64,000 bases of DNA from Monocercomonoides exilis PA203. Taxonomy: Eukaryota > Protista > Preaxostyla. The notes under the pieces were generated by a model, which had not been told where the DNA came from, did no database searches, and saw nothing but the letters and a program-made list of their open reading frames with translations. Both the position numbers and the translations under genes were made by a program. Below, one piece after another: positions 18,503 to 64,000 of the stretch (the stretch's first letter is position 1; every line of letters starts with the position of its first letter). The DNA is taken from positions 124,001 to 188,000 of the forward strand of contig LSRY02000069.1 of NCBI GenBank assembly GCA_001643675.2. Reading direction: 5' to 3'.

Positions 18503-18708
18503 ATTTCCGGTTTGAATCCTTTCTTAAATTTAAGAATTCAAATTATTTCCAAATAGTTTGTAAAGAAAAAAAATGCATGAAAAAATATGAAAATTTTGTT
18601 TATTCTCCTGGGAAACTGAATCTGGACACAAAGCTTGCAAGTTATTGCAATTATCGTTTAATAAAAGCAATAACAGGATGGATTCTGTCTTGTCCTCAAT
18701 TTGGATTT

Positions 18709-33209: not shown

Positions 33210-33236
33210 GGGTGGTTTTTTTTGATATCATAAAAA
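33210..33236 (+). repeat. GGG-type orphan transposon terminus
   Basis: GGGTGGTTTTTTTTGATATCATAAAAA is 1 mismatch from 58896-58922; both are preceded by AWWT. Confidence 0.5.
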
Positions 33237-33895
33237 AAGATCAAAAATCGAAAAAATAATATATATTGTGGTATTCTATGATCAAAAAGTTAAATTAATA
33301 TTTCATAAGTATTTAGCTTTTATCTCTGTCATATATATTTGTTTTATTTGTTCACATGAAAAAAAGCATACCTTTTTAATGTTTTTGATGATAAAGAATT
33401 TTCATGATCAAGTATCAAAAAAAAATGTGAAAAATTAAAAATAAAACTGTAAAAGGAAAATGCCAAGTTTTTCAACTTGCTAAACTATCCTAATAAATAA
33501 AAAATACTTTGAAAAACTTAATTGAAACAGTTTGTGAAAAAAGATTGTATCTCATTATAGATTTAATAACTTTTAACTAATTAAAGTTATTGGTTTTCTT
33601 CACTTTATTTTTTTCTTCAACTGAAATATCATTACAATGTATCAGTCCTTTCTTTTCGATTCGGTTTCTTCATCAAACGTTGAATGAAATACAATGAAAT
33701 CGATAATCAATGAATAAAACTAATTCGAACCAGTCTTTTTTCTCTTTATTCTTCTCATCACTTGTCCTTCCCGCTTCCTTTTCCATTCTTTCCTCATCTT
33801 CCTTCCATTTCCACTCTGCTTCATAAATACTCTCCTTTTGAAATGTCTCTGAAGTTGCTTGATTCCTCTCCAGCACTTTCTGTATCATTCTTCTC

Positions 33896-36800
33896 GGCAT
33901 AGGTGAAAATTGTACCACTTTCAGTTTGCATTTTTTCAAAATTTGAATATAATAGCGTTTATCTACTCAATTTAACTAAGCGATTCAAGGAGGGAAATTT
34001 CGAAATTCGATTAAAAATTTTCTCTCTGAAATTCTAAAATTTCGACACCCATAATATTTTTATTTTGATCATATTTTATTGAAATTTCTTTTTCTTGCTT
34101 TACATAGTTCGAATGAATTAATCAATTCAATCCAACAAGATAAAATATAGTTTTTATTGTTTGTCTCGATGAATATTAACCTATATTACTTTTTTCGTTG
34201 CTTATTTATAAAAATTCAATAAATTCAGGATGCTACCGTTTTAATAAAATAATGTGTAATATTGCTATCACACCTTCGAAGCAATAACGTAAATAAACGT
34301 GTGCAAGAATGCAAATAAATTTTAATTGCTTATAGACTTTTTTCATGCTGTTTTATCTCTAATTTTATTTGAACTACATTTGAAAGGTTTGTAACAAAAT
34401 GAAGATCGTGTGTCAACTGCATTTATTTGGATTGAGGACTGGATGGAGGAAGATGAGAAGAGAAGAATGGTGAGAGTGAAGTTGAATGGGCAATAGAAGA
34501 GCGAGCGAAAACAACATTTAATTTTTTTATTTGGAATTGGATATGAAAAGCGAAGGCGTGGTGTGTGTGGTGCTTGGAGTGGATGACGTAGAGGAGAGTT
34601 ACTTGAAGAGAAACAAACAGAGGATGAGGGGAGTGAATGGAAATGAAGAATTGTGGAGGTATTTTATTCTTGTTTGTTCATTTTCTTCATGTTCTATTTT
34701 TTATTTGTATTTTTGAATTTTTGATTTGATTGATGTGTGATGCGATCAGGTGTTGCCAGAAGCGCCGGGGGAGCATGAAACATGGGACATGGAAACAGTA
34801 CTTTTTTCTGGGACAGTCCTGGGAAAAATTGGGAGAAATGGGCAACCGAAGAGTGTTTGGCAGAATGAGCCAGGCAGAAAAAAATGGAGCGAACGGGAAA
34901 AGAAATTTTTGTTAAATTTATTTTTACAAAAATCTTTTCGGAAGCAGCAGCAGAAGAAGAGGCAGAAAAAAGTGAATTCAAGCTCAATGGGATATTTTTT
35001 GACATGGCGTCAAGAGGCATGGGGAAGGAGGAGAAGGAAAAGGAAGAATTTCTGTGAATGAATTTTATTACTCATCTTTTTGCCAATATTTCGCTTCACC
35101 CTCTTTTCCTCTTGTATTCCTCTCCAAATTATCATTTTTTTATATTTCAACTGCAAATGAGGCATGTTCGCCTTCAACAACTACGTCAACCCAAACCACA
35201 TGTTTTTTGAGCAGCAGCTCATTCTCATCAGTCTGTGATGCATATGATGTCGGAATTGTTCCTTCTCTGAACAACCCCTTGGCTTCTTTGACAGCCTCAA
35301 ACACCTCATTTATTGGGCATTGTCGGACAAGAAATATTGAATTCATTGGAAGCAAAGAAAACCCATTGAAGCCAGGGAGACAAAACACAACAGAAGATGG
35401 AGTAAATTCATTTGTTTGGTGCGAGTGGAACGGGTCGAGGGCAACTGGATCTGACGATTCTGTTTCAGACGGAATATCGAGTGGAGGGGCGATCTGCATG
35501 TATAATCTCAGTTCTGGAGAACTTTTCGTTTCGAATTGTATATTCAATGGATGTTTTGCGAATCGTCGTGGAGGTGGAATTATGTGTCATACAATCAAAT
35601 CTGTGTATATCGAAAATAATGTGTTTTGTAATTGTACTGCACAAAATCAATATGGAGGAGGAATGTACGTCAGCTCTGTTTCAACATGTGCTCGGATCAG
35701 TGAATGCGTATTTCAGAATTGTAAAGCAAATTGATATGGAGGAAGGCTTTGTATTCTTTTCAGGTTTCGGAACCTGACTGTTTTGTAGAGGAAAATCGAA
35801 AAGGAGAAAGTGAATGTGCTTTTGATTGCCGTTTTGCTTCATGTTCATTGACTGCATCAGACGAGGGAGGTATGTATTGCTCGAATATTCCTCAGCATTC
35901 AAAATGATGAACGCACAGTTCATCTCCTGTTCAGCTTCGTCACATGGTGGAGGAATGGGATTTGAACCTAATCAAGCAACAGCACTAAGTAATGGATGCA
36001 ATTGTTATTTCATTTTATTTTGTGAATGTATTTGCCTTGAATACCCTCCAGGTAACCACGATGTGTATTTTTCAGATGGAAATAATCTTTTTTCATCTCA
36101 CAATTCGTTCTACGAATCGTACACAACGAATACTGATGAGAAGAGAGTGTGCTATAATGGTAAAATCCTTCAACATACAGAAAAGATGTGGTGGCTGAGC
36201 ATCTCGATGAAGGATCGGTATGTTGGGGTGAGTGGAGATAATTCTTGCTATCTATGTGGGATGAATGAGTCAGCACCTTGCAAGACAGTGGGGTATGCGG
36301 TGGGTGTAAGCACGGCGTAGCTGAGCTCGACGATCACGGTGCTGAGTGGAAAGCATGTGAGCGAAGGGGTGACAATCAGTGTTGGGGAAAAGGAGATTTC
36401 TGTGGTTGGGAGAGGGAAAGCAGTGAGTGTGAGTGGGATAGATTCTCTTCCTTCTTCGATTACGCTGTTCAGTTTGATGATTGGGCAGTTGGAGTGATAT
36501 CTGTTGGAGGAGAAATATTTAAGCTTGCTAAAATAACGGTTGATTTCAGGTCTTAAGGAGAGGATCCAATCTTGGATATGCTATTTGTACCCACTTTTCC
36601 ACAGTCACTAATAATTGCTTTTGAAGAAAAAAGTCGATTCAAGCGCTGCAGTTCAAATATCGAATCACACACCGTTAAAAGAGTGGAATATTATTCCTGA
36701 TCAAGGCAGAAGCAATTTTTAGAACCAGTTTTGCAATTTTTTTTCCAAATTATTTGAAATTCCAATTTATTCATTGCTATTTTATTTATCTTTTTTTCAT

Positions 36801-37868
36801 AAATTCTTTAAAAATAAAGAATAATTGAATTGATTGTTTTTTATTTGTGCAAGTTTTCACTAATTCGCACTTTCATCTTTTATAATTGTATCGGCTAACG
36901 TCAGCAGCTTTCCAAAGAAAAAATAAAACATGTGTGCATTGTTATAATTGAGCTTGTTGTGAATGCTTTGTTATAAACAGTGATGAAAAATTGTTTAAAC
37001 AATAACAAACCGCAAACAGCAATGAACGAAAAAGAAGATGGAATGAAAAAGAAAATAACAATGTGGATTATTAAAAAAAAATAAAATACAGCATTTGAAG
37101 GTTATCCACAAAAAATAAAGTATTTTTTGTGAATTTTCGAAGACATCCCGCGACATCCCAATCATTGCATAATATCATTCAAAAGATCTCCTTCCTTTAT
37201 CTTCCCTCTCTTGTTGCAACAAGCTCCACACCATCCCAATGTTCTCCATCTCCCTCTTCTTTTCTCACCTTTCAAAATGCCAACTGCTCTTTCACCTCAC
37301 TTAACAAATACATCTGCCCCAATCCAGCTTTTCATTTCTCCTTTTATAAACAGAAATTCACACAGTTCCAACGAATACATTACCAATAATAGAATATAAA
37401 TCAATAATTATGAAATACATATAAAAATCTTATTATTACAATTATTTTTCTAGCCAATCATGTTAATTCCTTTCATATAAGTTGATACAAATTATATCTT
37501 GAAAGTGAAAACAAATAATTGCACGAAAACTTGTGAAATACAAAATAATCAAATCGATATAAATAACATAAAAAGTAATATAGGTAAATATTCACCGAGA
37601 CAAACAATAAAAACTATATTTTATCTTGTTGGATTGAATTGATTAATTCATTCGAACTATGTAAAGCAAGAAAAAGAAATTTCAATAAAATATGATCAAA
37701 ATAAAAATATTATGGGTGTCGAAATTTTAGAATTTCAGAGAGAAAATTTTTAATCGAATTTCGAAATTTCCCTCCTTGAATCGCTTAGTTAAATTGAGTA
37801 GATTAACGCTATTATATTCAAATTTTGAAAAAATGCAAACTGAAAGTGGTACAATTTACACCTATGCC
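33896..37868. mobile_element. GG-ended non-autonomous element with ~299-bp TIRs and cargo (Merlin-like; MULE not excluded)
   Basis: 33896-34194 and 37570-37868 are inverted copies with only a few mismatches, starting GGCATAGG; 8-bp TSD TTCTTCTC (33888-33895, 37869-37876). Confidence 0.93.
35054..36500 (+). pseudogene. Beta-helix-family surface protein fragment, cargo of the GGCATAGG element
   Basis: DAYDVGIVPSLNNPLASLTASNTSFIG, SSGGAICMY..SNCIFNGCFANRRGGGIMC, NCTAQNQYGGGMYV, CSASSHGGGMGF; contains stops and frameshifts. Confidence 0.8.
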
Positions 37869-46258: not shown

Positions 46259-49200
46259 AATACAATAATTGATTTTTGAGTATTTTGCAAATTAATAATA
46301 AAAACAAACTTTGTTAAAAATGAACAACAGTTATCAAAGTCACATTGAATAGTCTTTCTGTTTGTTTCATCAAAAATTGTCTATGTGCCAAACAAAATAA
46401 CCAGTTTCTAAACAAATAGGTCAAAATTCTTGAATTAATGAAAAATAACAACGATTTGTTCCAAACCTTTTATGTAGCTTTGACATTATATGTCAAACGT
46501 TCTCACATATTAAATATATCGAATGACTGTAAAATAATAAGAAAAATCTTCGAAGACGGTGCATGGGAAACAATTCATTTCACACAACACTTCATCCCAA
46601 ATAAAAAATATGTTAAAAAACAAATTATTACCAACTTTTTCCACTAACAGATTTTCAAAAAAAGCATCAGACATGTTTATTATTGTTATTTATTCACATT
46701 GAGCAAAATAGATCATGGTATTCTTAATGGCGCCATTAATAATAATTTGTATTTTTTATGATCAAAAATTTCAAAAATGAATGACAATTTTTTATTTTTG
46801 TTTCATTTAATTTGTAATTATTATTGCTTTATTAATGCAAACATGTCATCAAAAATTAGTTTTGATTTTTTTAATGTTTGAATAAAGGTGAAAAAAAAAT
46901 TAAATAAAATGCAATCTTTTAATGGTTTTTTTTAATAAAAAATATTTATGAAAAATTAAAAATTAATTACAAAAAAATAAATTTTTATTCAGTAAGTTGA
47001 TAAAATGTAAATCCAGACTTCCATCCTTCCAGTGATAAATTTTTCCAACACTGATTCCATTTATCTAGTGCTAGCAGTGACACAACCTCATCGTCGCATT
47101 CAAAGAAAATGCTTTTCTCGTCAATCAAATGCTTTCTATCCTTCACAATTGCAATGAAATGTCCATCTTTGAATTTTGATGTTGAATGAATCACAGTTCC
47201 ACAAAGCTGATATTTTGCTGTTATCATATCATTATCAGAAAAGAATTTCAGGGAAGTTTTTGATTTCAAAGGATCAAAAAAGCAGATATCAAAAGGGCCA
47301 TTTCCTTTTTCAGCAACAAACAGTTGAGTTAGAGGGGGATTGACTGATGAAGGTGTCGGATTGTTATGAAACACACACATACCACATGGAAAAGCATCAA
47401 GCCTGATCCATTTCAATTCAATTCTTCCAGTTGAACATTTTCCACACATCTGTTTCTGTTGATCCTCCTCCTCTTTGACAACAGAAAAATAAGAATTTAA
47501 ACCTTCAACAATGTCAGCGTTTGATATTGGCACCTCCAACATTATTCCCCTTGGCTTTGAAGTCAATTGATTACAAGACTGACATTTCATAAACTTGTGA
47601 CTGTGAAGTTGAAACTTTTTAATAACACCATCATCCTCCTCCGACAATAACTCCAAGAATTTTTCATATGTTGAAAGAGAACCTTTAGGTTCCATCAATG
47701 GTCCAAAATTATTCTCATACATTTGAATCATTCTCTTCGTTCCCCAATAGAATTTCTGAAAATCACACCCACTCAAACATTGCAGAACCAATTGAAGCGA
47801 TTGTCGATCTGTTAAGTTCTTTTTGCTCGAAAAGCTCCTTCCCAAATCCAGAGATGCAAAACATTGACACAATGAACTGAATGAACAAGTCTTTCCCAGA
47901 TTCCTCAATCCTCTTTTCGAAATTTTGTATTTGTAAACACAAGATCTTGAACCTATATCACCATCAATCACATGCATTGATAAACAGTCGATAAATCTCT
48001 CAATTGGTGCAAACATCAGATAAACAATGTCAGTTCTTGAAGGATTTTTTGAATTGGATTCCATATCGTCATCTTCGTTTGAAGATATTTTCTTTTTGCT
48101 GTGAAAGAGTGTTGCTAACTCTGGCTCTAAGGGTGATGAAGTTGACAAAGTTAAAGAGGGAGAGGAAGGGGAGGAGGAGGAAGAAGAACAAGAACAAGAA
48201 GAACAAGAAGAAGAGGAGGAGGAGGAAGAGGAAGGAGAGGAGTGAGATGGAGGAGAAGGAGAAGGAGAGGATGAAAATAAAGGAGAGGAAGAGGAAGAGG
48301 AGGATGAGAGAGAGGAAGGAGAGGAGTGAGATGGAGGAGAAGGAGAAGTGGAAGGGGAAGGAAAAGGAGAAAGAGAAGAAGACAAAGAGGATGAGGAAGA
48401 GGGGGAAGCAGGAAAGGAAGCAGATGAGGATGCGGATGAAACTGTTGAAGGATGAATATTCGAAGGAGTTAATGGAAAAGAAGATGGAAATGATGGGGAG
48501 GAAGAAGATTGAAATGAAGATGGAGAAGCCATATGTAAAGGATGGAAAGAGGATAAATTTGAAGGATAAGGAAAGGATGAGGAAGAAAATGAAGTCGATG
48601 GGAATGAGGAGGAGGAAGGAGATGAGAATGATGGGAAAGGTGAAGAAGATGATGGAATTGATTTTTCTGATGGAGGAAAAGCAGAAAACATAAAAGGAGA
48701 TGGAAAGGAGAGAGGGTTGATTGAGGAAGATGAGGATGATGATAATGTTGAAGTTGATGATGATAATGAAATTGATTTTGGAGTGTCATTGTGTGAAATG
48801 TAATCTTCTGAATCTTCCATATCCATTTCAATTGATTCAATTTTTTCATTTTCTGCTCCAAAATATCCAAAATACGATTTAGAAGAATTAAGTTGAGAAG
48901 AACGTTGTTTCCTTTTCATTAGCGGTGTTCTATCTGTTGACATTGCTTTCTTTTGATCGAAAAAGGATGCTCGAAAAGTCGGTGGTTTTATTTCAAACAC
49001 AAACTCTTGGCTTAGTGTCTGCTGAGAGAATTCTTTTGTCAGAATCAATAGCATTTCACTTTGTAATTCATAGGAGAGGCTATTGAAAACATGACTCAGC
49101 TCTTTTATGGTTCGTTACAGCGGATCAACATATTGCAAAATAAAAAAATAATAATAATAAATATTTATAAATCAAAAAAAGAATATTTAAAAAAAAACAT

Positions 49201-50452
49201 TGTATAAAGAAAAATAGCTTAAATTAAACATAATTAAAAAAAGACACGCCATTTGATGATTTCAATAAACTTCCGAAAAGTTGCCTTTTTACTTGTGTTT
49301 GTTGGAAAAACATAAATGAAACCATTTCTGCATGAGCGGGTGACATCTTTTGAAAAAAATTTGTGAGTTGGACCATATCCTTCTGCAGGCTTCTAAATTC
49401 AAATCCATTATGAACCCTTTTAGCAGACAACATTGTCGATAAACCGATCCAATCAATGAAATTGCAATATATGGGAATTTTTTTTTATGAGAAATGGAAC
49501 TCATAAAACAATAAAAAAATAATAAAAATCAAATTCAACCAAAAATGTAAAATTTCTGACCAATAAAAAATTGAACACAAAAAAATAAACAGAGATTATC
49601 TAATTTTGAACAAATATTAAATTAGATTCGATAAAAAAAATAAAAAAAAAAAATAATCGAAGTTTATTAAAAATTTCAAAAAATTTTTTTCTTTGCAAAA
49701 AAATAAAAATCAACTTAAATTGTCTTCTCATTATTTGAAAATTCAAAAATAAAATTAAAATACTTCAAAAAAATAAATATTTTTTATTTTAATAAAAAAT
49801 AATTTTATTAATTTTTATATCACTTAATAAATTATTTTAATAATTAATTGACAACATATATATGGCATGTTTGCATTAATAAAGCAATAATAATTACAAA
49901 TTAAATGAAACAAAAATAAAAAATTGTCATTCATTTTTGAAATTTTTGATCATAAAAAATACAAATTATTATTAATGGCGCCATTAAGAATACCATGATC
50001 TATTTTGCTCAATGTGAATAAATAACAATAATAAACATGTCTGATGCTTTTTTTGAAAATCTGTTAGTGGAAAAAGTTGGTAATAATTTGTTTTTTAACA
50101 TATTTTTTATTTGGGATGAAGTGTTGTGTGAAATGAATTGTTTCCCATGCACCGTCTTCGAAGATTTTTCTTATTATTTTACAGTCATTCGATATATTTA
50201 ATATGTGAGAACGTTTGACATATAATGTCAAAGCTACATAAAAGGTTTGGAACAAATCGTTGTTATTTTTCATTAATTCAAGAATTTTGACCTATTTGTT
50301 TAGAAACTGGTTATTTTGTTTGGCACATAGACAATTTTTGATGAAACAAACAGAAAGACTATTCAATGTGACTTTGATAACTGTTGTTCATTTTTAACAA
50401 AGTTTGTTTTTATTATTAATTTGCAAAATACTCAAAAATCAATTATTGTATT
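46259..50452 (-). mobile_element. 4.2-kb element bounded by 587-bp apparently perfect inverted repeats and carrying a USP gene
   Basis: 46259-46845 is the reverse complement of 49866-50452 (the identical 69-aa ORFs 46438..46647+ and 50064..50273- confirm this). No flush TSD; TTAA lies 3-4 nt outside each arm. Confidence 0.85.
46985..49054 (-). CDS. Ser/Pro-rich protein with a C-terminal USP (peptidase C19) deubiquitinase-like domain
   Basis: Cys box RGLRNLGKTCSFSSLCQ; Zn-finger pairs CQSC and CGKC; His box YQLCGTVIH..GHFIAIVK..FFECDDEVV; terminal FTFYQ. Upstream sequence to ~49433 is homologous to the first exons of the 54228 gene. Confidence 0.85.
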   Translation of the reverse strand: MLLILTKEFSQQTLSQEFVFEIKPPTFRASFFDQKKAMSTDRTPLMKRKQRSSQLNSSKSYFGYFGAENEKIESIEMDMEDSEDYISHNDTPKSISLSSSTSTLSSSSSSSINPLSFPSPFMFSAFPPSEKSIPSSSSPFPSFSSPSSSSFPSTSFSSSSFPYPSNLSSFHPLHMASPSSFQSSSSPSFPSSFPLTPSNIHPSTVSSASSSASFPASPSSSSSLSSSLSPFPSPSTSPSPPSHSSPSSLSSSSSSSSPLFSSSPSPSPPSHSSPSSSSSSSSSCSSCSCSSSSSSPSSPSLTLSTSSPLEPELATLFHSKKKISSNEDDDMESNSKNPSRTDIVYLMFAPIERFIDCLSMHVIDGDIGSRSCVYKYKISKRGLRNLGKTCSFSSLCQCFASLDLGRSFSSKKNLTDRQSLQLVLQCLSGCDFQKFYWGTKRMIQMYENNFGPLMEPKGSLSTYEKFLELLSEEDDGVIKKFQLHSHKFMKCQSCNQLTSKPRGIMLEVPISNADIVEGLNSYFSVVKEEEDQQKQMCGKCSTGRIELKWIRLDAFPCGMCVFHNNPTPSSVNPPLTQLFVAEKGNGPFDICFFDPLKSKTSLKFFSDNDMITAKYQLCGTVIHSTSKFKDGHFIAIVKDRKHLIDEKSIFFECDDEVVSLLALDKWNQCWKNLSLEGWKSGFTFYQLTE

Positions 50453-50508
50453 TTTTTAAGTGACTGAAGTGATGATAAGAAGATGAATGAAGTTATTAAA
50501 CATTATAT

Positions 50509-50748
50509 GGGTTATTCTTTTTGAAAAGTCGCAAATGTTTAATTATCAAACAAATCAAAAATTTCATATATAGCTCAAATTTCTGTTTCTTCTCACGAAT
50601 TTTCTTAAGAATGTTTGAAATAGCATTATCAAGATATTGATTCCATGTTTGTGAAGTTTAGTGTATGTCAACAAATTTTTGAGCAAAATATGAAATTTTT
50701 GGTTAATTGGAAAATTAAACATTTGCGACTTTTCAAAAAGAATCACCC
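50509..50748. mobile_element. 240-bp MITE with GGG termini and a 4-bp ATAT TSD (Sola-like)
   Basis: 36-bp TIRs GGGT(T/G)ATTCTTTTTGAAAAGTCGCAAATGTTTAATT with 1 mismatch; ATAT at 50505-50508 and 50749-50752. Confidence 0.85.
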
Positions 50749-51425
50749 ATATAAATAAATATATTTCTTCAAGAAAAATTGGAAAGGCTTATTGAAATGT
50801 TTTGTGTTGTTTGCTTTTTCGTTAATTGTTTTAAATTATTTTATTTAACTTTTGAGTATATTCAAATAAAGATGCTCATCCCTGTTTATCTGCAATTAAA
50901 TAATTTTCATTCTCTGTTCCATCATTCATTCAGAACCAACCGATGAGAGATATCGTCAACAACTTGTGCATTTTTCTCTTGTCTCTTCAGCATATTCCTC
51001 CTCTTCTTCTTCCCCTTCTTCTGTTTTGACTGATCTGTCTATTTGGCTGCTTAACGGAATCATTTATGCCAGAACACACGAAATAATCAAATAGTTTTAA
51101 CTCCCAGTTCTTCGCATATTGAACATATGCAGTGTTGTGCGTGTGATTGAAATGACAAAGAGAAATGAAATTGTTGTCCAGAGAAATTCAACGCTGATAG
51201 AGGTATTTACGATCCGTTTCAATCTGCTTGAATTTCTCCTGCTTCTTCTAAGATGTTGCAGAATTGAGAAGAAGAGAAAGAAACCAGCGAAATGCGACGA
51301 ATGCAATTCAAACTCAATGTGACTTCATTATGTGTGGCGACTAGCCTGGCGATCCTCCCCTCTGCAGCTGTTGTGGATGTTCACCTCTACAACATGGAGA
51401 AAGTGATTGCGTAAAAGATCTTTCA

Positions 51426-52686
51426 TTGAACCAGTTGAACCACACGTTTGCCCACGAGCTCACTCCAGCCGACGAGACATTCAACCGCAACGATGGGCTG
51501 CTCTACACAGAGGCTGGCATGCGCTTGCTGCTGGATCTGTTGCATTTTCCTTTCAATTTAGGTACCAATCCGCTGCTATATAAAGACACAGAGGTGTTTG
51601 TGTGTGTGTGTGCAAAGCAACATGAAAATATCCTATTGATTAGCATACACACAATTTTACAAATTTTAATGTAAGAGTGGAGTATTGAGTGGAGGTTGGA
51701 AATATGAGGAAGGTGATGATGCATCAGATGGGAGGTGTGGATTTGGAGGTAATGGATGAGGAGACGCAATTGGAGGAGAAGGAGGAGGAAATGATAACAA
51801 CAATGGATGAGATGGAAGTGGTGGAAATCAAGGAGAAAACAATTGAGAATGAATATGTACCATTTCAATAGATCCACGCGAGGGACATCTTGAAACAGGA
51901 GAAGAACATATGTATAGATTTTCATGTGACCCCCACAACGAAAATATTGATCAAGCATCGTTCATCTGGCAACTGCGAGGAGGAGCGAAGCAAGTGGTGA
52001 AGGATATAGCATGCCAGATACTGAATCAAACCGAAGCGCATGTTGTGTTTGAGAGTGGACGAGGTGCAGAGACGACGGCGATGCACTTTCTGGAGCAGGT
52101 GCTTATCGGTGAGGTGGATGCACCAATGAAGTCGATTGTGCTGCGGAACGAAGGTTGGACGAGCTTCAACGATAGATTTGATCTGACTGAAGTGGAGCGT
52201 CTGAATGCGTCTGCGTCTGATTTCCCTCCGTTTGAATGACTTTTCATGGCAGGGATTGTGCAAGTGCATGAAATGTGGCCAACAAATTGTAGCTTCCGTC
52301 CGCTGATGCAAAGAGGTTATTTGGAAAGGATTCCGATCAATCTGGGAAGCAGATTCAGCTCGATGAGTGAGATTAACGCGAATGTTGGAATAGGAGGAGT
52401 AGGGGGAGGAGATGGGAATGTGAATGGAACGAATCATTCACCATCATCGAACAATGGAATAGTGATGGGAATTGGTGGAGCACAAGGAGGAGCACAAGGA
52501 GCAGCCGGAGGAGGAAGTGATGGAACAGAAGGAATAACTCACATGAAAACAGTTCTGCAAGCGCTGCTGGAAGGCGACGGTTTCATCGCGAAGGAAGGAG
52601 CAGAGCCACTTGTGGATGAGAAAAAGACAGCAACTCCATGTTCCTCTTTCTCCGCTTCCTGGCCAGCTATGCTTATTGTCACATGA
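51426..52686 (+). pseudogene. Hypothetical host gene fragment with intron(s) and stops
   Basis: GC-richer protein-like ORFs 51426..51674, 51910..52239 and 52246..52686; the last two share a frame across a TGA. Confidence 0.4.
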
Positions 52687-53584
52687 GCGAATTGGCTTTG
52701 GGAGTGTGGCAGGTGGGAGCATCGAGCGGAGGCTGGTGTGTCTGGTGTGTCTGCGTGCGAGGAGCACTCTGCACTGCAGAAGAGGGCGTGTGAGAAAGGA
52801 GAGAAGAGAGGAATAATATTTGATACAGAAGAGAGTCGTCCACTGATCAAGTCGGTTGCTGCGATAATTTAACCGATTGGGGGAAAAAGAACAAAAGGAG
52901 AGAAATGTGTGTATGTGTGTGTTGTGGAGTCGCATGTTCTTAAAGGCTGTTTAAGTTGAAGAAATTTCATTTCAATGAATTATCACTATCGTTATCTTCA
53001 CATTTTCGATCTCAAATTGTTATTATCTTTTTCAAATTAGAATGAAGTCGGTGGTGAAATTACAAAAAAAGCGAAGCAGAAATGGATGATTATTGGCATT
53101 TGGAGAAGAAAGTGATCAAAAAGAGGATATATGTGTTTTAATTGTGATCGATGAATAATTATGTGAAAAAGAAAATAAAGGAAGATTTGTGAAATGAAAC
53201 AAAGAAAAAATTAAAATTGTTTATTCATTGTTATTGTTTCATCTCGGATATTTCAAAAAGAAAATGAATGAATAATTGTTGATGTTCAAACAATAATTTA
53301 ACTTATTATTTTTATTTGTTCATCAGTTAAACAAATAATCTCTATTCAACACATCTGTGCAGTATTTAAAAATTTTTATCTCTCTCTCTCTCTTTTTATT
53401 ATTTACTCATTTCAGAATTTTTTATTTTGAAATAATTTTTTTTATTTCTATTTGTTATCAAAACTAATTTATTTTAATGGCTATTTTCATTTTTTGATTT
53501 TTTTACAGGAAAAAAAATATTTAATAATGAAAACGAACTTTAACAAAAAAATGAGTTAATCAATTCGAACTGGAAAAAAAAAGC

Positions 53585-54180
53585 AAAATGACAACTCGGG
53601 ATTTTTCTTTATTTTTTGTTTTTTAGAAAAAAATATTTTTTCGAAAATGACTAATAACTTTATGTAGTTCAAAAACATCTGCATCATTTTATTTTTCCAA
53701 ATAAAAATAATCACAAAAATGATGACAAGCTCAAATGAGAAGTGTGATCAGTCACTTACAGATATATGAAAAAATGAGTATGATTAATCATTTCGATGCA
53801 GATGATTAGTATTTGACAAAAACAAGAAGGAAAAATTTTGCAAGAGGGAAAGTTATTTGATAAAGAATGATCGAAATTTTGATCTATCATTGTGTTTCTT
53901 TTTTTCTAATAACTTTCCCTCTTGCAAAATTTTTCCTTCTTGTTTTTGTCAAATACTAATCATCTGCATCGAAATGATTAATCATACTCATTTTTTCATA
54001 TATCTGTAAGTGACTGATCACACTTCTCATTTGAGCTTGTCATCATTTTTGTGATTATTTTTATTTGGAAAAATAAAATGATGCAGATGTTTTTGAACTA
54101 CATAAAGTTATTAGTCATTTTCGAAAAAATATTTTTTTCTAAAAAACAAAAAATAAAGAAAAATCCCGAGTTGTCATTTT
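53585..54180. repeat. Long hairpin with 273-bp inverted arms and a 50-nt spacer
   Basis: 53585-53857 is the reverse complement of 53908-54180; no mismatch noticed. Confidence 0.93.
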
Positions 54181-54227: not shown

Positions 54228-55238
54228 ATGTCATTTTCAAAACAGGAGTCAACTCTAAATTCACGGTGCAACGTTCTATGGAAAGAAATACAACGCATCG
54301 GTGGAAATGACGTTGATTCATTGCTCGTCTATTTGTTTTACAACTACAGAAAATCATCTGCAGTTATAAATGATTAACTGAAATCCTTGAATGGTTTGGA
54401 CTTCAAAATTTTTTGATTGATAATAACTTGAATTTTTCTCTTGTAATAGAATTTTTTAATTAATATTTGTTATTTTGTTATTTAAAAAACTTAGAATATT
54501 ACGAAATTCTTCTGAAAGATCTCTCAGTTGTGTACAAGTACGCACAATTACATACGCAAACGATGATCCTACAAGCACTGACGCGCAACGCATCATTATC
54601 TGAGCTTCTGGACTATGGATTTGACATTACTGAAGGAAAGTTTAATTATGCAAAACAAACTCTTACAAAAAACCAAGGATTTTTAATTCCGGCACAATTG
54701 CCTCACGCACCATCGTGTAAAAGTGGTTTGTATTGTATTTTTCTATAATTTCATTTTTAACTGTCTTTTTGTTTATTCATTTATTTAACTTTTTTGAGGT
54801 CTTAATGAACAAGATTGGGAAAAGGGCAACAATTGGATGTTGGCCCATTCCACAGAAGCATCAACGTCATTGCAATCAGCCAAGAAAAGATCAAAAAAGG
54901 TTCCAGATTACGCACAGTTCATTGAGGAATCTGCATGGGATAATATTATCATTACAGAAAAAAATAATTCTCACAATATACAATCTTCTCCATCAGAAAA
55001 ATTATGCCAACAAAATAAAAAATCAAATATTATATCAGAAAAAAAATCTTCTCCATCTCATGCAGTTAACGATCCTATTAACACTCCACTTCGAGCTGAA
55101 AGATGGACTACAAAAATCAAACAAAATAATACACTTCATTACCGTCGAACTTCTCCATCACCAATACCATTTCATAAACTAGTTAAACGAAAATCTCCCA
55201 TTTCATCATCATCTTCTTCCTCTCCTTCTTCTTCCTCC

Positions 55239-55270
<32 letters not shown>

Positions 55271-58154
55271 ATTTTCATCATCATCTTCGTCATCATCATC
55301 TCCTTCTCCCTCTCCCTCTCCTTCTCCTTCTCCTTCTCCCTCTCCCTCTCCTTCTCCCTCTCCCTCTCCTTCTCCTTCTCCTTCTCCTTCTCCTTCTTCC
55401 TCTTCCTCTTCATCTTCATCTTCATCTTCATCTTCTTCCTCTTCTTCCTTTTCGATCAAAGTTAAAAGAAAAGATACAATCAATACTTCTCCAGAAGACA
55501 AAGCAACCTCATCTTTTTGCAACGAAAATATATGGGTTAGCGGCCAACTTATGGAATATGTCACCTCATCCACTCTTATTCCTCCTCATACATTCCAAAA
55601 TCTAGTCTCATCTTTCACAAAAGAGAGCAACACCTCAACACAATAACAAAAGTCACAGTTTATTACAAGAGATAATTCAACAAATATTGATTCATTTATT
55701 TCTTCTTCATCCAAATCAACGGCTAATGTTTTAAAATTCACACCAAATACTCCATTAAAAACAGTAAAAGGGTTGGCAAATCTTGGAAACACATGCAACT
55801 TGGCATCTCTTCTGCAATGCTGGTCCTCGATCTGCAGTTCAAAACCAACGATCTTTACAAAATCACACTTAAAAGATACATTATCATTTCAAATGATGAG
55901 TATTTGCAATCAAATCCTCAAAGATGGAAAAAAAGTACATTCATGGATCCCATCAATTGTTAACAAATGGGAAAAATTTTGCAGATACGGAAGCAAGCAG
56001 CAGCAGAATGTGTTAGAGGCATTCGATAATCTTCATAGACTTTTCGAAAAAGATGGAATGATAAAGAAAGATTGCTTCTGTCCTATTTTGATTTTTCATT
56101 TCAAATGATTTAAATGTCAAAAACTCACATCACATATCGACAACATCAATAATAGCATAATCATCAATTCTTCATCTATTCACAATGGTTTATCTTCTTT
56201 GTTTTCAACTGAAATATTGAACGGAAAAAATGCTGTCTATTGCAATGAATGCAAAGAAAAATACTGCACTGCTAGGTGGGAGGAAATGATTTCATTTCCA
56301 GAGGTCCTAGCCCTCTCCCATGAATGTACCGATCCTGCTAGTTCTCCACCTTCTCGAACACTTCTAATCGAGACTGATATGTCGAATAAACGTTCATTTT
56401 GCAAAGGATTTACAAATGAAAATAAAACTTCATTTCACAACCAAAATAAAGAAACAACATTCTATCACTTAATTGGACAAATCCTTCACAAACAGTTTGA
56501 TAATAGCAACGGTCATCACATTGCTGTTGTGGAAAGAAATAAAGGAATGAAAAAGATGTGGATCACCTGTAACGATGATGATATTGATGCATTTGACAGT
56601 GATAAATGGTCAAAGTCATGGAAAGATCTCTTTTCTCAGGGCTATATTCCTTCTTTATCATTCTACGTGAAAGAGAAATCACAATCAACTCAACTAAGTG
56701 TCCAATTTGGTGGTTCCTCTATTTCTTCCTCCTCTTCTCAATCTTTAAATATCAACAACACAAACACAGACACAACTCCATCATCATCGTTTATCACACC
56801 ACCACATCATTCTTCTTCCATTCCACAACTTTCTTCATCAATAATAACTAACTATGGATTGGAAGCACTTAAAGAAAAAAGAAAGAAAACGGGCATCTTT
56901 TCTCCCAACGAAAAGAGATTAATCTTCAAGCCAAAGACGAAATTATGGAAAGAGTTTTCTGAAGAAACAAACATCAAAGTTTCTCTTTCTCACTTCTACA
57001 AACTCACCACCAATTTCTCCAAAGCGAAAAGACGAACGGATCTCTGCGGCATGTGTGAGAAGTTGAACTATCTGGAAAACAAATTGAAGTCATCGCAAAA
57101 CAAAAATGGACTGTCTGAAGCAGAGTTTCATACACTTAAATTACTTCGACAACATCGTCTTGTTGCAGAAATGCAACGAAAACATTATCAATCAACTGTT
57201 GATAATCTGAAAGAGGGAGAAGCAGTCTTCGTCTTCGACTTCAAAGAGAAATGGAAACTCCCTATCAGAAAAAATCAACTTCAACAAGAATTCTTTAATT
57301 ACCAACAAGTTTCTCAATTCACAATCATCTCTCTTCAAAAAATTAATAATCAACAAATAAAAAGAACTTTCAACTTCTTCTCCGACTGCCTCTCAAATGA
57401 TCACAGATTTGTTATTGAGTGTCTGGAATCTGTGATCAAAAGACACTTCTTCTCAGACACTCACACTTTTAAGTTCTTCTGCGATTCGGGTCCACACAAC
57501 CGAAATCGCTTCCTCCTTCACTTCATTCTCTCCAAACAATCCAAACTTCTCAAAAAGAAAAACACCCAACTCAATTTCTTCGCTGAACACCATGGAAAAA
57601 ATATTTGTGATAGTGAATTTGGTGCGTTAGTGAATGCAATCGACAACAATCTTTCGACTGAACACATCACCACACTTCATGACTTAATCAACTTCTTCGA
57701 AAGCAATATGAATGTTTCGACATCTGTTTCATCATCATCACAATTTAATGTTTTTGAATCATCCTCATCAAACAACTCCCCATCGTCATCATCTATCAAG
57801 GAGTGTGTGCATGAGAGGTACTTTGAAGAATATGTACCATCTCAACAAATCTCATGGCCATCATTGTCAGTTCCCCACATGAAAGATTACTTGTATTTTG
57901 AGCGCAAGGGCTCATTTGTCTGCGCATCTGCTGTTGGATATCTTCCTCAACGCTCTCTGGTTGCACTCGAATCTTCAACAATGAAAGAAAAAGTTCAACG
58001 TTCAAGAAAGTCATTTCACTCTGATATCACATCATCTAACTCTTCTCTTCTTTCTCAATCTTCTCAAGATCTTCTTTCAAGGAGATTTGAGCTTCTTCTT
58101 GACTCTTCTTCTATTAATGAATCTCAAAATTGTTCTTTTGGTGTCCCCTATTAA
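54228..58154 (+). pseudogene. Sola(2)-like DDD transposase with an in-frame inserted USP/peptidase-C19 domain; 3 exons and 3 in-frame stops
   Basis: Exons 54228-54393, 54495-54725 and 54799-58154, joined by frame-preserving GTTTG..AG introns. ORFs 54837, 55773 and 56199 share one frame. USP motifs: GLANLGNTCNLASLLQ, QQQNVLEAF, YHLIGQILH..GHHIAVV..WITCNDD. Transposase motifs: TDLCGMCE, VFVFDFKEKW, FSDCLSNDH, FFCDSGPHNRN, FFAEHHGKNICDSEFG. Stops: TAA 54375, TAA 55644, TGA 56106. Confidence 0.82.
55204..55448 (+). repeat. Poly-Ser/(Ser-Pro)n coding microsatellite linker
   Basis: TCT/TCC runs flanking tandem TCTCCY hexamers. Confidence 0.85.
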
Positions 58155-58158
58155 GAAA

Positions 58159-58306
58159 CTAGTTGTTGTGTATGCTCAGCTGGCACTCAATCGGAAGGGT
58201 GCTGGACATGACTGTTCGTATTAGATATTGCAGCCTTCGGGCTGCTTTATCCGGACCTGGATACGACGAACAGCCTCCCAGGTGCACAACAGTTAGAATC
58301 CGATTG
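58159..58306 (+). ncRNA. Candidate structured cis-RNA element (multi-stem with pseudoknot), identity unknown
   Basis: 14-bp outer stem, 9-bp, 8-bp, 6-bp C(UUCG)G and 6-bp stems, plus a 7-bp loop-to-3' pairing; G-U pairs favour the plus strand. Confidence 0.6.
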
Positions 58307-58895
58307 TTTTCTTGTGCTTTTTGTCCCTATAATGTCCCTATTTTCACTTGGTAATTGTCCCGAAATCTATATTTGTATATCTAAATAGAGATTCATTTTT
58401 TGATGGGTGTTGTGAAGAGTTTCAATGATTTTTGAATTTGATTTTAGGAAAGGAGAATAGCTGAGAGTGTGAAGTGATGTTTCATCACTGTGTCTGCCTT
58501 TTTTCTCTGTTGAATTTGATCTTTTTGAGTTTGGACAAGAGAAATATCAGAAAGTGCAGAGTGAGAAAAAAACAAAAGATAAACATTCAAGTTTGTTTTT
58601 GGACTTAAAGAATTTGAAATCTTTTTTGCTTGGAATTGACTATGACACCATGTATTTGTTGTAATAGTTATGCTTTTTATTGAATCTTTTATTGTTCATG
58701 CAAATTGGTATAGAATTGACAATTGGGGAATGTTTTAATGATGATGTGGTAAAAATATTTTTTTTAGAAAGTGATGCAACAAGAAAAGAAACTTATTTGT
58801 TGTTTTCTATTTTCAAGATGATTAATACAATGAAGTGTTAATGTTATTTATGTGTTATTTTGTTTTATGATTGTTATCAAATTAGCAATGTATTT

Positions 58896-58922
58896 GGGTG
58901 ATTTTTTTTGATATCATAAAAA
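58896..58922 (+). repeat. GGG-type orphan transposon terminus
   Basis: GGGTGATTTTTTTTGATATCATAAAAA matches 33210; GGGTGATT also begins the right TIR of the 50509 MITE. Confidence 0.5.
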
Positions 58923-61719
58923 ATTACGAAGTTTGATCAAAATATTTTTTCATTAAGGGTGGGGTTGAAAAGAAAATATTTCAGAAAAAATTTGAAAAAA
59001 ATATGCATTAATATATTATTATAATTATTAATTTGTTGATTTTAATTTGATTTTAATTGTTTTTATTACAAAATTTGAAGAAAACATAAAAAATTAATTG
59101 AAAATATCGATAATTCAATAAACAGAACGATTCAAATGTTCACTGGTATTTTAAACGTGAAAACAATAATAACAATATGAAATTAATCAATTTTTTATTT
59201 AAAAAACTTGTTTTATGATGTTAATGCAAAGTAATTTATAAATTGACTATGAAGATCTTGAAACATTTATAGAAAACGAATAATTTTCATTAACACATAT
59301 TGAGAAATATGATGGAAGCACATAATATTTGTCGAATAAACAATTGTTCATTGTTAATAATTGTATTTAAATTAATAATTCTTTAAATTAGTTATTTAAA
59401 TTAATTGATCAAAGCTATTGAAAAAAATTACAAAAGAAACAATATGATATTTAAGAATTTCTCATTCAGACACTTTTTAATCTTCCACAGAACGAAAATC
59501 TTCACTTGAACTTTTTCTTTTTCCCCTCTCTCAATTCTTCATCATCTTCCTCATCTTTCATCCTTCATCCTGATACTACCTCCTCAGTTGCTCGGCTTTT
59601 GCAGGCTGCTCTTTTTATATGCAGACTCCACAAACACCTTTTTCATATGCAACTGTGGAAGCGGTTGAAGTGCGTGTGTCTTATAACAACTGCGCCCTCT
59701 CCTTTTCATGTATATTGTGTCAGTTTCTGCATCCACTTCCTCTGAACTTAAATTCCTCTCAGTCTCGTTTTCTTTGATCACTGTCGCTGCCCTCGATGTT
59801 GTCAGCCCACCCACACTGGCCGGAAAGACTGTCTCGAGGTTGGCGGTCCAGACATTAGAAATGTCTTCGCTTTGGGCTTTGCCAACATCACCAGCATCGT
59901 GCTGTCATGCAGCGGGACAGTTCTAGCGGGAAAGCGGAGAGGAGATGTGCAGAAGACTGTGCTGCCTAGGCGTGAGTGTTCACCAGTTGCTCGCATTGAT
60001 TTGCATCCTCATCCAGTGCATCATCACTTGCTCAACAAACAGCGACTGCCTCTTTCTCGACTGCTCCCACAAAGCTGTCGCATCTGCCAACCCCATTTCC
60101 ATCCTCGCTCTCCGCTGAGCCTTGAATAACGCCTTTGCGGGCAAGTGCATCTTTCTCCAGTGCTGCAGCATCCAAGCCAAAACAACGAGTTCCTCTTTTC
60201 CCTTCGCTTTTTCCAACTCTCTCTCGTCACGGAAGCCTCCTTTTGCGACACCAACTCCTCCCGTCCCGGCCTCAACTTCGATGCCGGTCACGATCTCATC
60301 CTCTTCTTCTTCTACTGCGCCCAACAGATATTCGTCGATAAAGCCACCAGATCATCCGCTTGCCCTTTAATCCTCTGAATCGATAACACTCGTCAATATC
60401 TTTTGGATCTCCTCCTTCTCTTTCGAAGCCCATATCCCTCTTGCCAAAATCCGATTCTGGTTTATCTCCAGAAGTCTTGATCATGTTCATTTGAACACCA
60501 TCAGTTGGCTTCCGTTGTGTTTCTCAATGACTGCATCATCCTTTAAGCCACCTCTCCTTCAAATGTTCCTTCGCATCCTCCCTTTTTTCTCCTTCCAACC
60601 AACGTGCCTGCATCAACTCCAAGCTTCTTTGTGCATGCAAAAACACCACTCACCTCTCCAACGCACCTGTTCGTCCCTTTCGCCTCTTTCCTTATGCTTC
60701 TTGTACTCTCACTGCTTTCTCCCTTAATCTCTTCCACATCAACCTCTCAGTTCTCAAAGTTGCTTCAACTTTGCTTATGCTTGACGATGAATCAATAAGC
60801 ATCTTTGAACATCTTTTAATAACAGTCCTCGCCATTGTTAGCAAAAGCATAGTTTTTCTTTATCTTTCTGGAATATAAATGTCAGAAATCTCCTTCATCA
60901 TGATGCGCTTTATCTTTACTATCATTTTTCTCGGCTAGCTCTGTCGAAGCATGCTCGAAGGCCACTTTCAACTCACCAACAACAGCCTCTCCATCCTGAA
61001 TTACCCCTCCACCTTCCACAACAGCAACTGCTTTAACTTTTGTGTACTCCTCATTGCCTAACCCTGGAAAGGCTCCTGAATGCTCTTTCATTTACTCACA
61101 TAGAAACGAAACGGTGGATATTCTTTCCTCTGCTTCGCCAATCAATTCCCTTTCATGATGATTGTTGCAATGCTCCAAAGAGCATATGAAAAAGAAGAAA
61201 CGGACGGAATGGTTCTGACATTCAACGAACTCTTCTTGCTTCATTGTCGCGTACTGTTACTGTTCGTCGACGTCTTCTCTTCAAACTTCTCTCCATTTCT
61301 TTTTAACTTTAACATTTATCAATAACTTCATTTTTTTCTTTCAAATTTCCAACCATCATTTATTGACAAATCAAATTCTTCTTCTCTTTATCTTCATTCT
61401 CTTCATTCACTTATCATCTTCTTTTCATTTTTTTTAAAGAAGTTGATTTCTTCATAAATTCCATTCTTTTTAATTTCTGCTATTATCCATTATGAAGATG
61501 CAAAAAATGAAGAAATACGATTAGGAAAAGAAGAAAAAGTGATCGTAGTAGTAGAAGTGAAATGGAAAGAGGAAGAGGAAGAAGAGGAAGAAGAGGAAGA
61601 AGAGGAAGAAGAGGAAGAATAGGAAGAAGAGGAAGAAGGAGAAGTAGAAGAAGAAGAAGAAGAAATAGCCTCATCAATCGAAAGCGGAAGCGAAGAAAAC
61701 GGAACTCTTAAAGCCAGGC

Positions 61720-64000
61720 TCACAAAACGATCATGAATGAAGAAAGAAGAAGAAGAAGAAGAAGAAGAAGAAGAAGAAGAAGAAGAAGAAAGAGAGGAAG
61801 AAGAAGAAGAAGAAGAAGAAGAAGAAGAAGAAGAAAGAGAGGAAGAAGAAGAAGAAGAAGAAGAAGAAGAAGAAGAAGAAGAAGAAGAAGAAGCGTAGAA
61901 AAAGAAATATCCAAGAAGGAGAAAGAAGGAGAAGAAGGAGAAGAAGGTGAAGAAGAAGGTGAAGAAGAAGAAAAGGAAGAAGAAGAAGAATAAATTGAAG
62001 AAGAAGAAGAAGAAGAAGAAGCAGAGAATGAGGCATTGAGTGTGCCAGTAGCAGCTGAGGCTGTTGAGAAAGCATCGACTGAACGGCTAGCTGTCTGCAC
62101 ACTCCGACGAGAATTCCGCGATGCGGCAGTGATCGCTCTTCTTACCTCTCTTCTTTCTCCTCTTCTGCTTTGTCTGCTGATATTCTCAACTTCTTCTTCT
62201 TCTAAACTTCTTTCTCTTTCTCCCTCATTTTCAATTTCAATATCGTCTCTTTCTTCTCTTTCGTTTGAACTTCCTTCGTCATTATCGTTGTCATTATCTT
62301 CTTCATTCTCTTCATTTTCAGCTTCTTCTGAATCCAGCGGTGTTATATGCTTTCTATTTAAGCTGCTTTTGATGTCTGCAGGAATTAGTTCTGGAGGGGT
62401 TGGGGAAGCGATCTGGGCGATGAAGGGATTATTTTCTGAAGTTGCATTGTTTTGAGCAAAATTCGAAGGAGATAGCGGACTTGGGCTGAATACGTGCTTT
62501 CTATCTGAATCTATGGAAGTTTCTCTTATATCACCTTCTTTATTATTATCATCCACTTCTTTGTTACTTCCTTCTTCTTTTCCTTCCTCTTTCCTCTTCT
62601 TCGCATACGCCTCCCCTCCCATTCTTGTCATCTTCAGCACGATCCCAAAGATATCCATCTCCACCAGCTGCTTTCTAAAAGCCCCGCTAATCTCGCACAC
62701 AACCACCACAAAACTCAGCACATTCGCCAAGTTAATTCCCTCCATCGTCTCCAGCAGCTGCGGAACAACAGAAGAGAGCAAGATATGTGTGGAAGGCCAG
62801 GAGGGGAAACTGATTCTGATAGAAGACAAAGAATGTGCTATGCGTCTGTCTTGCTTGGCAAAGTGGGTTAAGGCGCGGGAGGCGTAGACGAGAGGAGGAG
62901 TTGGGCAGAGGCGGAGGTAGGCGTTGGGGCTGGTGGAGGAGAGGGAAGAGAGAGAGGTGAGGGAAGGGAACTTGGTGAAAAAGAGGGATATGAGAAGGCG
63001 GATGAAGCAGGTGCCGGAGTCGAAGGGAAGTTTTTGGTCGGAAGAGGAATATGAAGAGGGAGAGTAAAAGGGAGAGGAAGAAGAAGAATACATTGCTTCC
63101 GTCGCATTTGCTGCTGATGCGATTCTTCCACTTCCACTTCCACCCCCACCAGGAGAAGAAGCCGGAGAAAAGAAAATCGACGCTTTTTCCTCCGGTTTCT
63201 GGTACAGCTGCAGCGCAATCCTGTCTTCCATCACGTCCTCTGCCCCAAAGCCCAGTTCAGCAAAGGCCGAAATGCAAGCGACAGCCAAAGAGACTGTGCG
63301 TGGTGTGTGCGTGAGCGGGTTGATCAGCTTCAGCATCGACTCGAACGTGAACGAGTACATCTTCACTGCCAGCATTTCGCAGGGGCAGCCAAACCGCACT
63401 CCATTATATTCCCTCCTTCTTGTGATTGAAGTGATAGCGCTGTCAGCGTCAGGCCGGTTGTGTCTCGTGCCCAGCATCACCACGAAGAACTGCAGGGCGC
63501 CAAAAATAAGCTCATCTGGAACTGATCTCAGCCCTGCAGACGCCCACTCGATGGCTCTGAGGGAATCCAGCGACAGACGCTCGCTTTCTCCCCTCTTCGC
63601 TGCCTCCAACAGGATCTGCAGGACGGTTGTCTGAAGAGCTGTGTTTGGGATACCAATAAAAGGAGCATGCGAGGCATTGCAACTGAAATGTGCTCAAAGC
63701 TGACAGCAGACGATGCAAACAGCGCGACATGCGAGGCGGAGAGGGAGCGGTCGACCTCGCAGTACCTCTTCATCTGCTCTGCATTCAGTAGCTCAGGAAA
63801 GATCGGGTTCCACAAGTCGAAGTACTTTGAGGGCGGGTGAGTTTCAGCCAGGCGGTTGAGGGCGAGCAAAGCAGCGTGCTGGACGGTGGGGGAACTGATG
63901 CGCAGGCATTCTTTTGCCCATTTGGCTCCTGTGATGTCAGGGTCGTCGATGCTGTCGCCGCCGCTGAAGAAAGAGGCGAGGACGTCTGTGGTAGCAGAGC
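61720..64000 (-). CDS. Large hypothetical host protein, helical (ARM/HEAT-like) with acidic and Ser-rich tracts; 5'-partial and frameshifted
   Basis: ORF 61720..63609 (629 aa) plus 63528..63869 in another frame. Amphipathic helices (VYASRALTHFA, LANVLSFVVVVCEISGAFRKQLVEMDIFGIVLKM). May continue through 59584-61723. Confidence 0.45.
61741..61893. repeat. (GAA)n microsatellite
   Basis: Tandem GAA with two AAGAGG interruptions. Confidence 0.9.

Follow-up and report, generated by a model that had tools for sequence, protein, structure and literature searches.

In the mitochondrion-less gut protist Monocercomonoides exilis, the transposase of a multi-copy transposon carries a USP deubiquitinase (DUB) within its own reading frame. 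The gene described here, at positions 54228–58154 of the window (the whole 64,000-nucleotide stretch of strain PA203 that was analysed, from contig LSRY02000069.1), is a dead copy of this family, a cut-and-paste transposon of the Sola2 clade. We have high confidence in the layout of the protein, the fold of its core, purifying selection on both domains, the presence of an open paralogue and the Sola2-like character of the termini. As to function, we lean towards the view that the tethered USP takes ubiquitin off the transposase complex, which would then last longer.

Gene structure and the transposase core

The gene lies on the forward strand and is predicted to be spliced from three exons. 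Exon 1 (54228–54393) encodes an N-terminal helical domain, and exon 2 (54495–54725) continues an N-terminal domain that is common to DUB-less Sola2-type relatives. Two phase 1 introns of the form GTTTG..AG separate the exons, intron 1 (54394–54494) being 101 nt and intron 2 (54726–54798) 73 nt long, compared with 48–52 nt for the latter in paralogues. Their removal, already proposed in the initial annotation, is predicted from the comparison of copies: the junctions fall at identical codons in 6 paralogues whose intron sequences and lengths differ, and both are also present in L009 (a contig of different sample origin, with a core ~32% identical) and in the public model MONOS_11334. Exon 3 (54799–58154) runs in a single frame to a TAA at 58152. 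It begins with a W..STEAS box (54834–54863), the final conserved transposase motif ahead of the insertion slot, which appears as TEPSS or TEESS in published Sola2 proteins. A variable linker (54864–55763) with a Ser/Pro run at 55194–55453 leads to the USP/C19 domain (55764–56660), which is followed by an invariant QFGGS (56703–56717), the transposase core (56853–57722; helical motif, TDxCxxC..H zinc motif and DDD triad, with Asp codons at 57237, 57483 and 57609), and the C-terminal region with the stop codon (57813–58154).

The first reading of a full USP domain agrees with both Pfam and PDB. Both pieces of the window USP match Pfam UCH/UCH_1, and the USP of the open paralogue matches the whole UCH model (E 3e-16) and 45 PDB USP sequences, including USP15 and USP34, the latter across residues 6–286. 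All hallmarks of the family are present, namely the Cys, Gln (QQN) and His boxes, the triad Asp and the two CxxC zinc knuckles of the fingers, one knuckle Cys being a stop in the window copy. The catalytic codons (Cys 55794, His 56514, Asp 56574) are retained in all eight aligned copies of the family. A tree of USP domains has long branches and does not distinguish one capture from several.

While the layout, coordinates and motifs of the initial annotation stand, its single frame is not open in the window copy, which contains three in-frame stops; at these it had hinted solely by the word “stop-repaired”. The TAA at 54375–54377 replaces a Leu found in 5 paralogues, the TAA at 55644–55646 lies where paralogues have an open frame, and the TGA at 56106–56108 takes the place of the first zinc-knuckle Cys, which paralogues keep. 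Short-read contigs over 55460–59400 have CAA at 55644 in every case and TGT at 56106 in most; they differ from the window at further positions and derive from sister copies. The TGA at 56106 is retained in a minor fraction of the depth (~40/829 in one run), and the TAA at 55644, absent from every one of these contigs, could reflect an uncommon allele or a mistake in the assembly. The window copy is probably a pseudogene. An alternative genetic code with TAA read as Gln was rejected, given that exon 3 contains 51 CAR codons against one TAA and that the stops vary among copies. The most similar proteins come from M. exilis itself (uncharacterised MONOS_ entries), encoded on contigs of assembly GCA_001643675.2; in MONOS_11334, a predicted intron covers part of the USP. 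In all searches the spliced model was used in separate pieces rather than as a joined protein, and stops were coded X in one tree.

In a set of 50%-identity representatives, 699 sequences are related to the core at E ≤ 0.001, and an alignment of 108 of them shows almost no variation at the three Asp, in the TDxCxxC..H motif or in HGK. By sequence alone, the core matched nothing in Pfam or PDB. A model built from the alignment reached a pLDDT of 92.5, compared with only 40 from the single sequence, and its best structural matches were Mos1, IstA, Hermes and retroviral integrases (Z ~12, rmsd 3 Å over 130–175 residues). As modelled, the C-terminal half therefore has the RNase-H/DDE fold that the first reading presupposed. 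By language-model features the nearest named family is Pfam DUF7869 (PF25273; 0.96), which we take to cover Sola1-like cores; it is matched in 11 of the 108 core relatives, with the window core falling below the threshold of the model.

By eye rather than by profile score, the published proteins Sola2_DFa-2 and Sola2_PPa-1 (PMC3627910) show the same motif order as the window protein, N-terminal motifs included: the exon-2 “LxDFGF” helix, the TEPSS/TEESS box, the IRKL/STFYK helical part, TDxCxxC, DFKEN, HxSxF, WxDxxxHF and HGKSxxD. The box lies ~20 residues ahead of the core in the published Sola2 proteins and ~690 residues ahead of it in the window. Together with the modelled fold, these ordered motifs bear out the earlier Sola2-type reading at the protein level; the results on terminal inverted repeats (TIRs) and target site duplications (TSDs) are incomplete and suggest the same.

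Paralogues, selection and the insertion slot

Seven paralogues share the layout of the window copy, so that this family (family A) comprises eight loci on several contigs with unrelated flanks. One of them, L002, is open across all three exons, and thus provides a copy in which USP and DDD core are joined in one frame, as the initial annotation had required. The other seven are broken by 1–4 stops or by a frameshift, at positions that differ between copies; all eight loci keep one frame through differing linkers. Median pairwise dN/dS is 0.15 for exon 1, 0.09 for exon 2, 0.08 for the core, 0.25 for the C-terminus, and 0.27 for the USP, the last measured at dS 0.6–1.5. Both USP and core are under purifying selection, which has kept the fusion. 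Between the window copy and its paralogues, dS falls from 1.1–1.6 in exon 2 and the USP to 0.45 for the core and 0.18 for the 3′ end, which indicates either that the copies are mosaic or that constraint at the nucleic-acid level acts on the 3′ end. Read depth on the core is 10–20 times that on the USP part, a ratio that is not a copy number.

Directly 3′ of the stop lies a conserved candidate for a structured RNA (58159–58306, forward strand), a GC-rich block of 150 nt that is ~95% conserved, has a folding z of −3.3, and combines a stem with a TCCCAGG motif. It has no Rfam match. Family B (see below) and L011 share the TCCCAGG and a stem of different sequence. Beyond it, a non-coding 3′ arm (58307–58891, forward strand) is common to all seven paralogues. 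A second gene on the minus strand past the stop was considered and rejected: it is open for 179 codons in L002 alone and lacks codon periodicity. Elsewhere in the window, a stem-plus-TCCCAGG copy on the minus strand (18613–18700), closest to that of L011, sits behind degraded coding-like DNA in which no Sola2 core was detected.

The slot between the STEAS box and the DxC motif varies widely in content. It spans 724–740 residues in family A, and a second M. exilis family (family B, loci L008 and L006), with a core 44% identical, carries a diverged USP in the same position. In six protease-free relatives (L010, L011, L013, L015, L016 and P0031) the distance is 88–282 residues, and in close relatives from other samples the slot holds a low-complexity linker only. 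The closest outside relative (P0013/L011, 41%), which groups with the two M. exilis families in a supported clade, has a slot without a DUB, as does P0047 of Streblomastix strix. Since the DUB-less relatives have both parts of the transposase with no protease between them, and the Sola2 references have ~20 residues there, the initial inference that the USP splits the transposase is well founded. In L009 the distance is 539 residues, and the slot holds an OTU-like domain with DG.C and HY motifs that a language model matches to OTU clusters (0.93); this domain has no Pfam or PDB match. Because the tree nests L009 within another supported clade, surrounded by sequences that have no DUB, one tolerant loop probably acquired a deubiquitinase on two independent occasions, and two such gains point to selection for the activity. 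No USP fusion outside M. exilis was found among 150 core relatives, 12 metagenome loci and long USP hits, within the limits set by word seeds, a length window and short contigs.

Three further observations concern related sequences. Ahead of its OTU-like domain, L009 carries one more small domain, degenerate and either OTU-like or of another kind (1021–1320; residues 136–235 of P0020), with a weak match to Pfam Gb3_synth. P0175, an ENA metagenome protein of 1107 aa, combines a reverse transcriptase (PF00078) with a USP (PF00443), possibly in a USP-bearing retroelement. Low-depth contigs of run X6 (organism B, another study) are 93–98% alike to the USP His box and to the core; a related strain or sample hence contains both parts, which does not imply their linkage.

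Element ends and neighbouring DNA

Five places share a 28-bp terminus that starts with GGG and borders on unrelated DNA: window 33210 and 58896, L002 1022, L007 1343 and L005 19103. In L002 and L007 it faces the gene from 7–8.5 kb upstream. Sola2 termini were reportedly described by Bao et al. in 2009 as 5′-GRG..CYC-3′, a form into which the GGG start fits. All five clean termini adjoin an AWWT 4-mer (chance ~6e-6, calculated post hoc), and a 4-bp AWWT target site duplication is a feature of Sola2 (PMC3627910); the pair in L005 does not match.

Within the 3′ arm of the window gene, an ATTT target is followed by such a terminus (58892–58923, forward strand), accompanied by a spike in read depth. 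Homology to the paralogues ends at 58892, and L002, L004 and L007 continue through the ATTT, i.e., they display the empty site. The terminus at 58896–58923 is identical to the left end of L002 (28/28), and 60752–64000 is 95–96% identical to the right arm of L002 and L003, in reverse. Hence a second family member, ~21 kb long by extrapolation, has inserted 740 nt past the stop of the gene. On the other side, an AAAT followed by GGG at 33210–33237 (forward strand) is a candidate left terminus whose link to the gene is tentative; cargo between 33210 and the gene recurs near other copies, including a USP-only gene as in L007, and the element to which the window gene itself belongs may have its left end at 33210. 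Taken together, the termini, AWWT 4-mers and empty site suggest large (~20 kb) elements of Sola2 type, with no element spanned end to end and no full TSD pair.

The USP-only companion gene (46988–49480, minus strand) encodes the N-domain and a diverged USP with no DDD core, in the same arrangement as in L007, and sits within a 690-bp inverted repeat (46259–46949 / 49773–50452). The element that holds the transposase gene probably carries it as cargo. Inverted repeats near the gene (1.4 kb in L001, 605 bp in L006, 1.75 kb in L007, and the window palindrome) were considered as TIRs and rejected, being copy-specific, with no common ends and no TSD. This palindrome (53585–54180), near-perfect with 280-nt arms and a 36-nt loop, lies 47 nt upstream of the ATG; it has no TSD and no match in the other loci.

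Rearranged DNA is frequent around these genes. Copy-specific inverted duplications of 0.6–1.75 kb, 96–99.8% identical, occur in L001 (4265–5662/11356–12762), L006 (7352–7956/13407–14011) and L007 (5158–6910/14394–16145), the outer layers of the last being older and more diverged. AT-rich palindromes recur at module junctions (window 53585–54180, 50503–50754, 27516–27754 and 20503–20714; L002 1–306; L006 7626–7957), and a cargo block at 51060–53018 is inverted relative to L002, L004 and L005; palindromes and inverted block suggest hairpin-linked inversions. A 560-bp inverted repeat (97%; 19394–19953 / 21272–21831) encloses short palindromes, with no TSD seen. At 33896–37868 lies an element with 310-bp TIRs (97%) that start with GGCATA, and the 8-bp direct repeat TTCTTCTC on both sides; it is Merlin-like by TSD length and has a beta-helix-like ORF but no visible transposase. 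In L008, an 18.6-kb pair of inverted repeats (1299–1733 / 19450–19887) is bordered by a similar terminus. Finally, 11227–13916 is a tandem array of ~30 copies of a 90-bp unit, ~70% alike and probably coding.

Possible roles of the deubiquitinase and known systems

The intact gene would encode one protein of ~1,270 residues: N-terminal domain, flexible linker, USP, linker and DDD core. In the explanation that we favour, the USP would have been captured from a host gene into an insertion-tolerant loop, would be catalytically active, and would strip ubiquitin in cis from the transposase or transpososome to which it is tethered; the transposase may thereby escape proteasomal or p97-type removal for long enough to pair and move ~20 kb elements. 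Given the layout, we judge the chances of capture, activity and cis action of the USP to be evenly balanced. Tethering in one chain favours action in cis, and the same idea of self-protection has been put forward for Helitron DUBs (PMC9741609). Preservation of the USP triad in family A and in the 44%-identical second family is further support. On the other hand, most relatives manage without a DUB, most family-A copies are broken, and the separate USP-only genes that travel with the elements are compatible with action in trans too; the support from a double gain is weakened by an OTU call made from motifs and a language-model match without Pfam. That the fusion is an artefact of assembly or annotation joining two adjacent genes is scarcely credible: no single short-read contig runs from USP to core and public gene models divide the locus, but eight loci on different contigs keep one frame through differing linkers, L002 is free of stops, and the 454-era protein MONOS_16737 joins the USP to the start of the core. 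It is also very unlikely that the USP is a passenger captured once and without benefit, or that the genes are a host family domesticated from the element. The abundant cargo, the many broken copies and the mosaic-like drop in dS would fit such a history, which is largely refuted by dN/dS well below 1. It is further opposed by intact catalytic residues in two distant families, by the independent OTU gain, and by a family member having inserted into another one where sister copies show an empty site.

A less likely possibility is that the USP works on the host at donor or target sites, with chromatin or repair factors as its substrates (ubiquitinated histones, PCNA or break-signalling chains); it could steer the repair of excision gaps or keep the chromatin of the element open. 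Such a role has been proposed for the Ulp1 and OTU domains of Ginger1 and Mutator (PMC2836005), the USP has changed more rapidly than the core, as would be expected if it faces the host, and USP-only companions exist; this role would, however, not need an insertion inside the transposase. We consider it rather unlikely that the USP is (also) a self-processing protease whose cut after the ubiquitin-like QFGG separates the core from the N-domain and the USP and thereby switches the transposase to maturation, release or destruction. QFGGS lies 17 residues past the USP, is the sole Gly-Gly of exon 3, and is invariant in all eight copies and in three more proteins, and human USP1 cuts itself at an internal ubiquitin-like Gly-Gly (PMC8975806). 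Yet chance alone would give about one Gly-Gly (0.69 per protein), and the linker has a further invariant block, FITP. The QFGG codons barely vary, so that constraint may act on the DNA, and QFGG is missing from family B and L009. Protection in cis, action on chromatin or repair, and self-processing are not mutually exclusive. A bolder synthesis, in which giant Sola2 elements of a protist clade would combine an exchangeable DUB slot (USP in M. exilis, OTU in a relative), self-processing of a USP polyprotein at a ubiquitin-mimic Gly-Gly and control by a structured 3′ RNA into a self-regulating transposase in the manner of viral protease polyproteins, is speculative and improbable.

The family would name part of the unclassified repeats that make up 35% of the M. 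exilis assembly (PMC8767320), and it would extend Sola2 to oxymonads. The question why so many transposons encode proteases for ubiquitin or SUMO goes back to 2006–2010 and has seen little testing; the family described here offers a clean test, since an open single-chain gene can be set against close DUB-less relatives, a relative whose slot holds another DUB, and companion genes with the DUB only.

Among known systems, the Sola2 elements of Dictyostelium fasciculatum and Polysphondylium pallidum (DFa-1 to DFa-3, PPa-1, PPa-4 and PPa-5; PMC3627910) resemble the M. exilis family in their motifs from the N-domain to the third Asp, and probably also in short TIRs, AWWT 4-mers at their ends and cargo-bearing elements >10 kb. 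They differ in having ~20 residues and no protease in the slot, and in their cargo, a Fanzor nuclease; here, five cargo ORFs, covering part of the cargo, gave no Pfam match to TnpB/Fanzor, and the 3′ arm has no second frame. Human USP1 (PMC8975806), like the candidate here, is a USP with an internal ubiquitin-like Gly-Gly, but it is a cellular enzyme with demonstrated cleavage, whereas self-cleavage of the M. exilis USP is only conjectured. A full-text literature search found no description of a USP-Sola fusion, in line with the initial annotation, which did not mention that a C19 hydrolase has already been linked to a transposase of another superfamily: XP_001314237.1 of Trichomonas vaginalis, also a metamonad, joins transposase_11 to Peptidase C19 (PMC2836005). 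This lone protein, mentioned there in passing and likened here by description rather than sequence, has an IS4/IS5-like transposase. More generally, Ulp1 and OTU domains are known in Ginger1 and Mutator (PMC2836005) and OTU or VTD domains in Helitrons, where VTD DUBs are active (PMC9741609). These systems likewise fuse a ubiquitin/SUMO cysteine protease to a transposition protein, but they involve other superfamilies and other protease families, and the Ginger1 domain is C-terminal while the USP lies between two transposase parts. Protease-transposase fusion as such is therefore already known, and what sets this family apart is an internal, apparently exchangeable DUB slot in a Sola2-type transposase.
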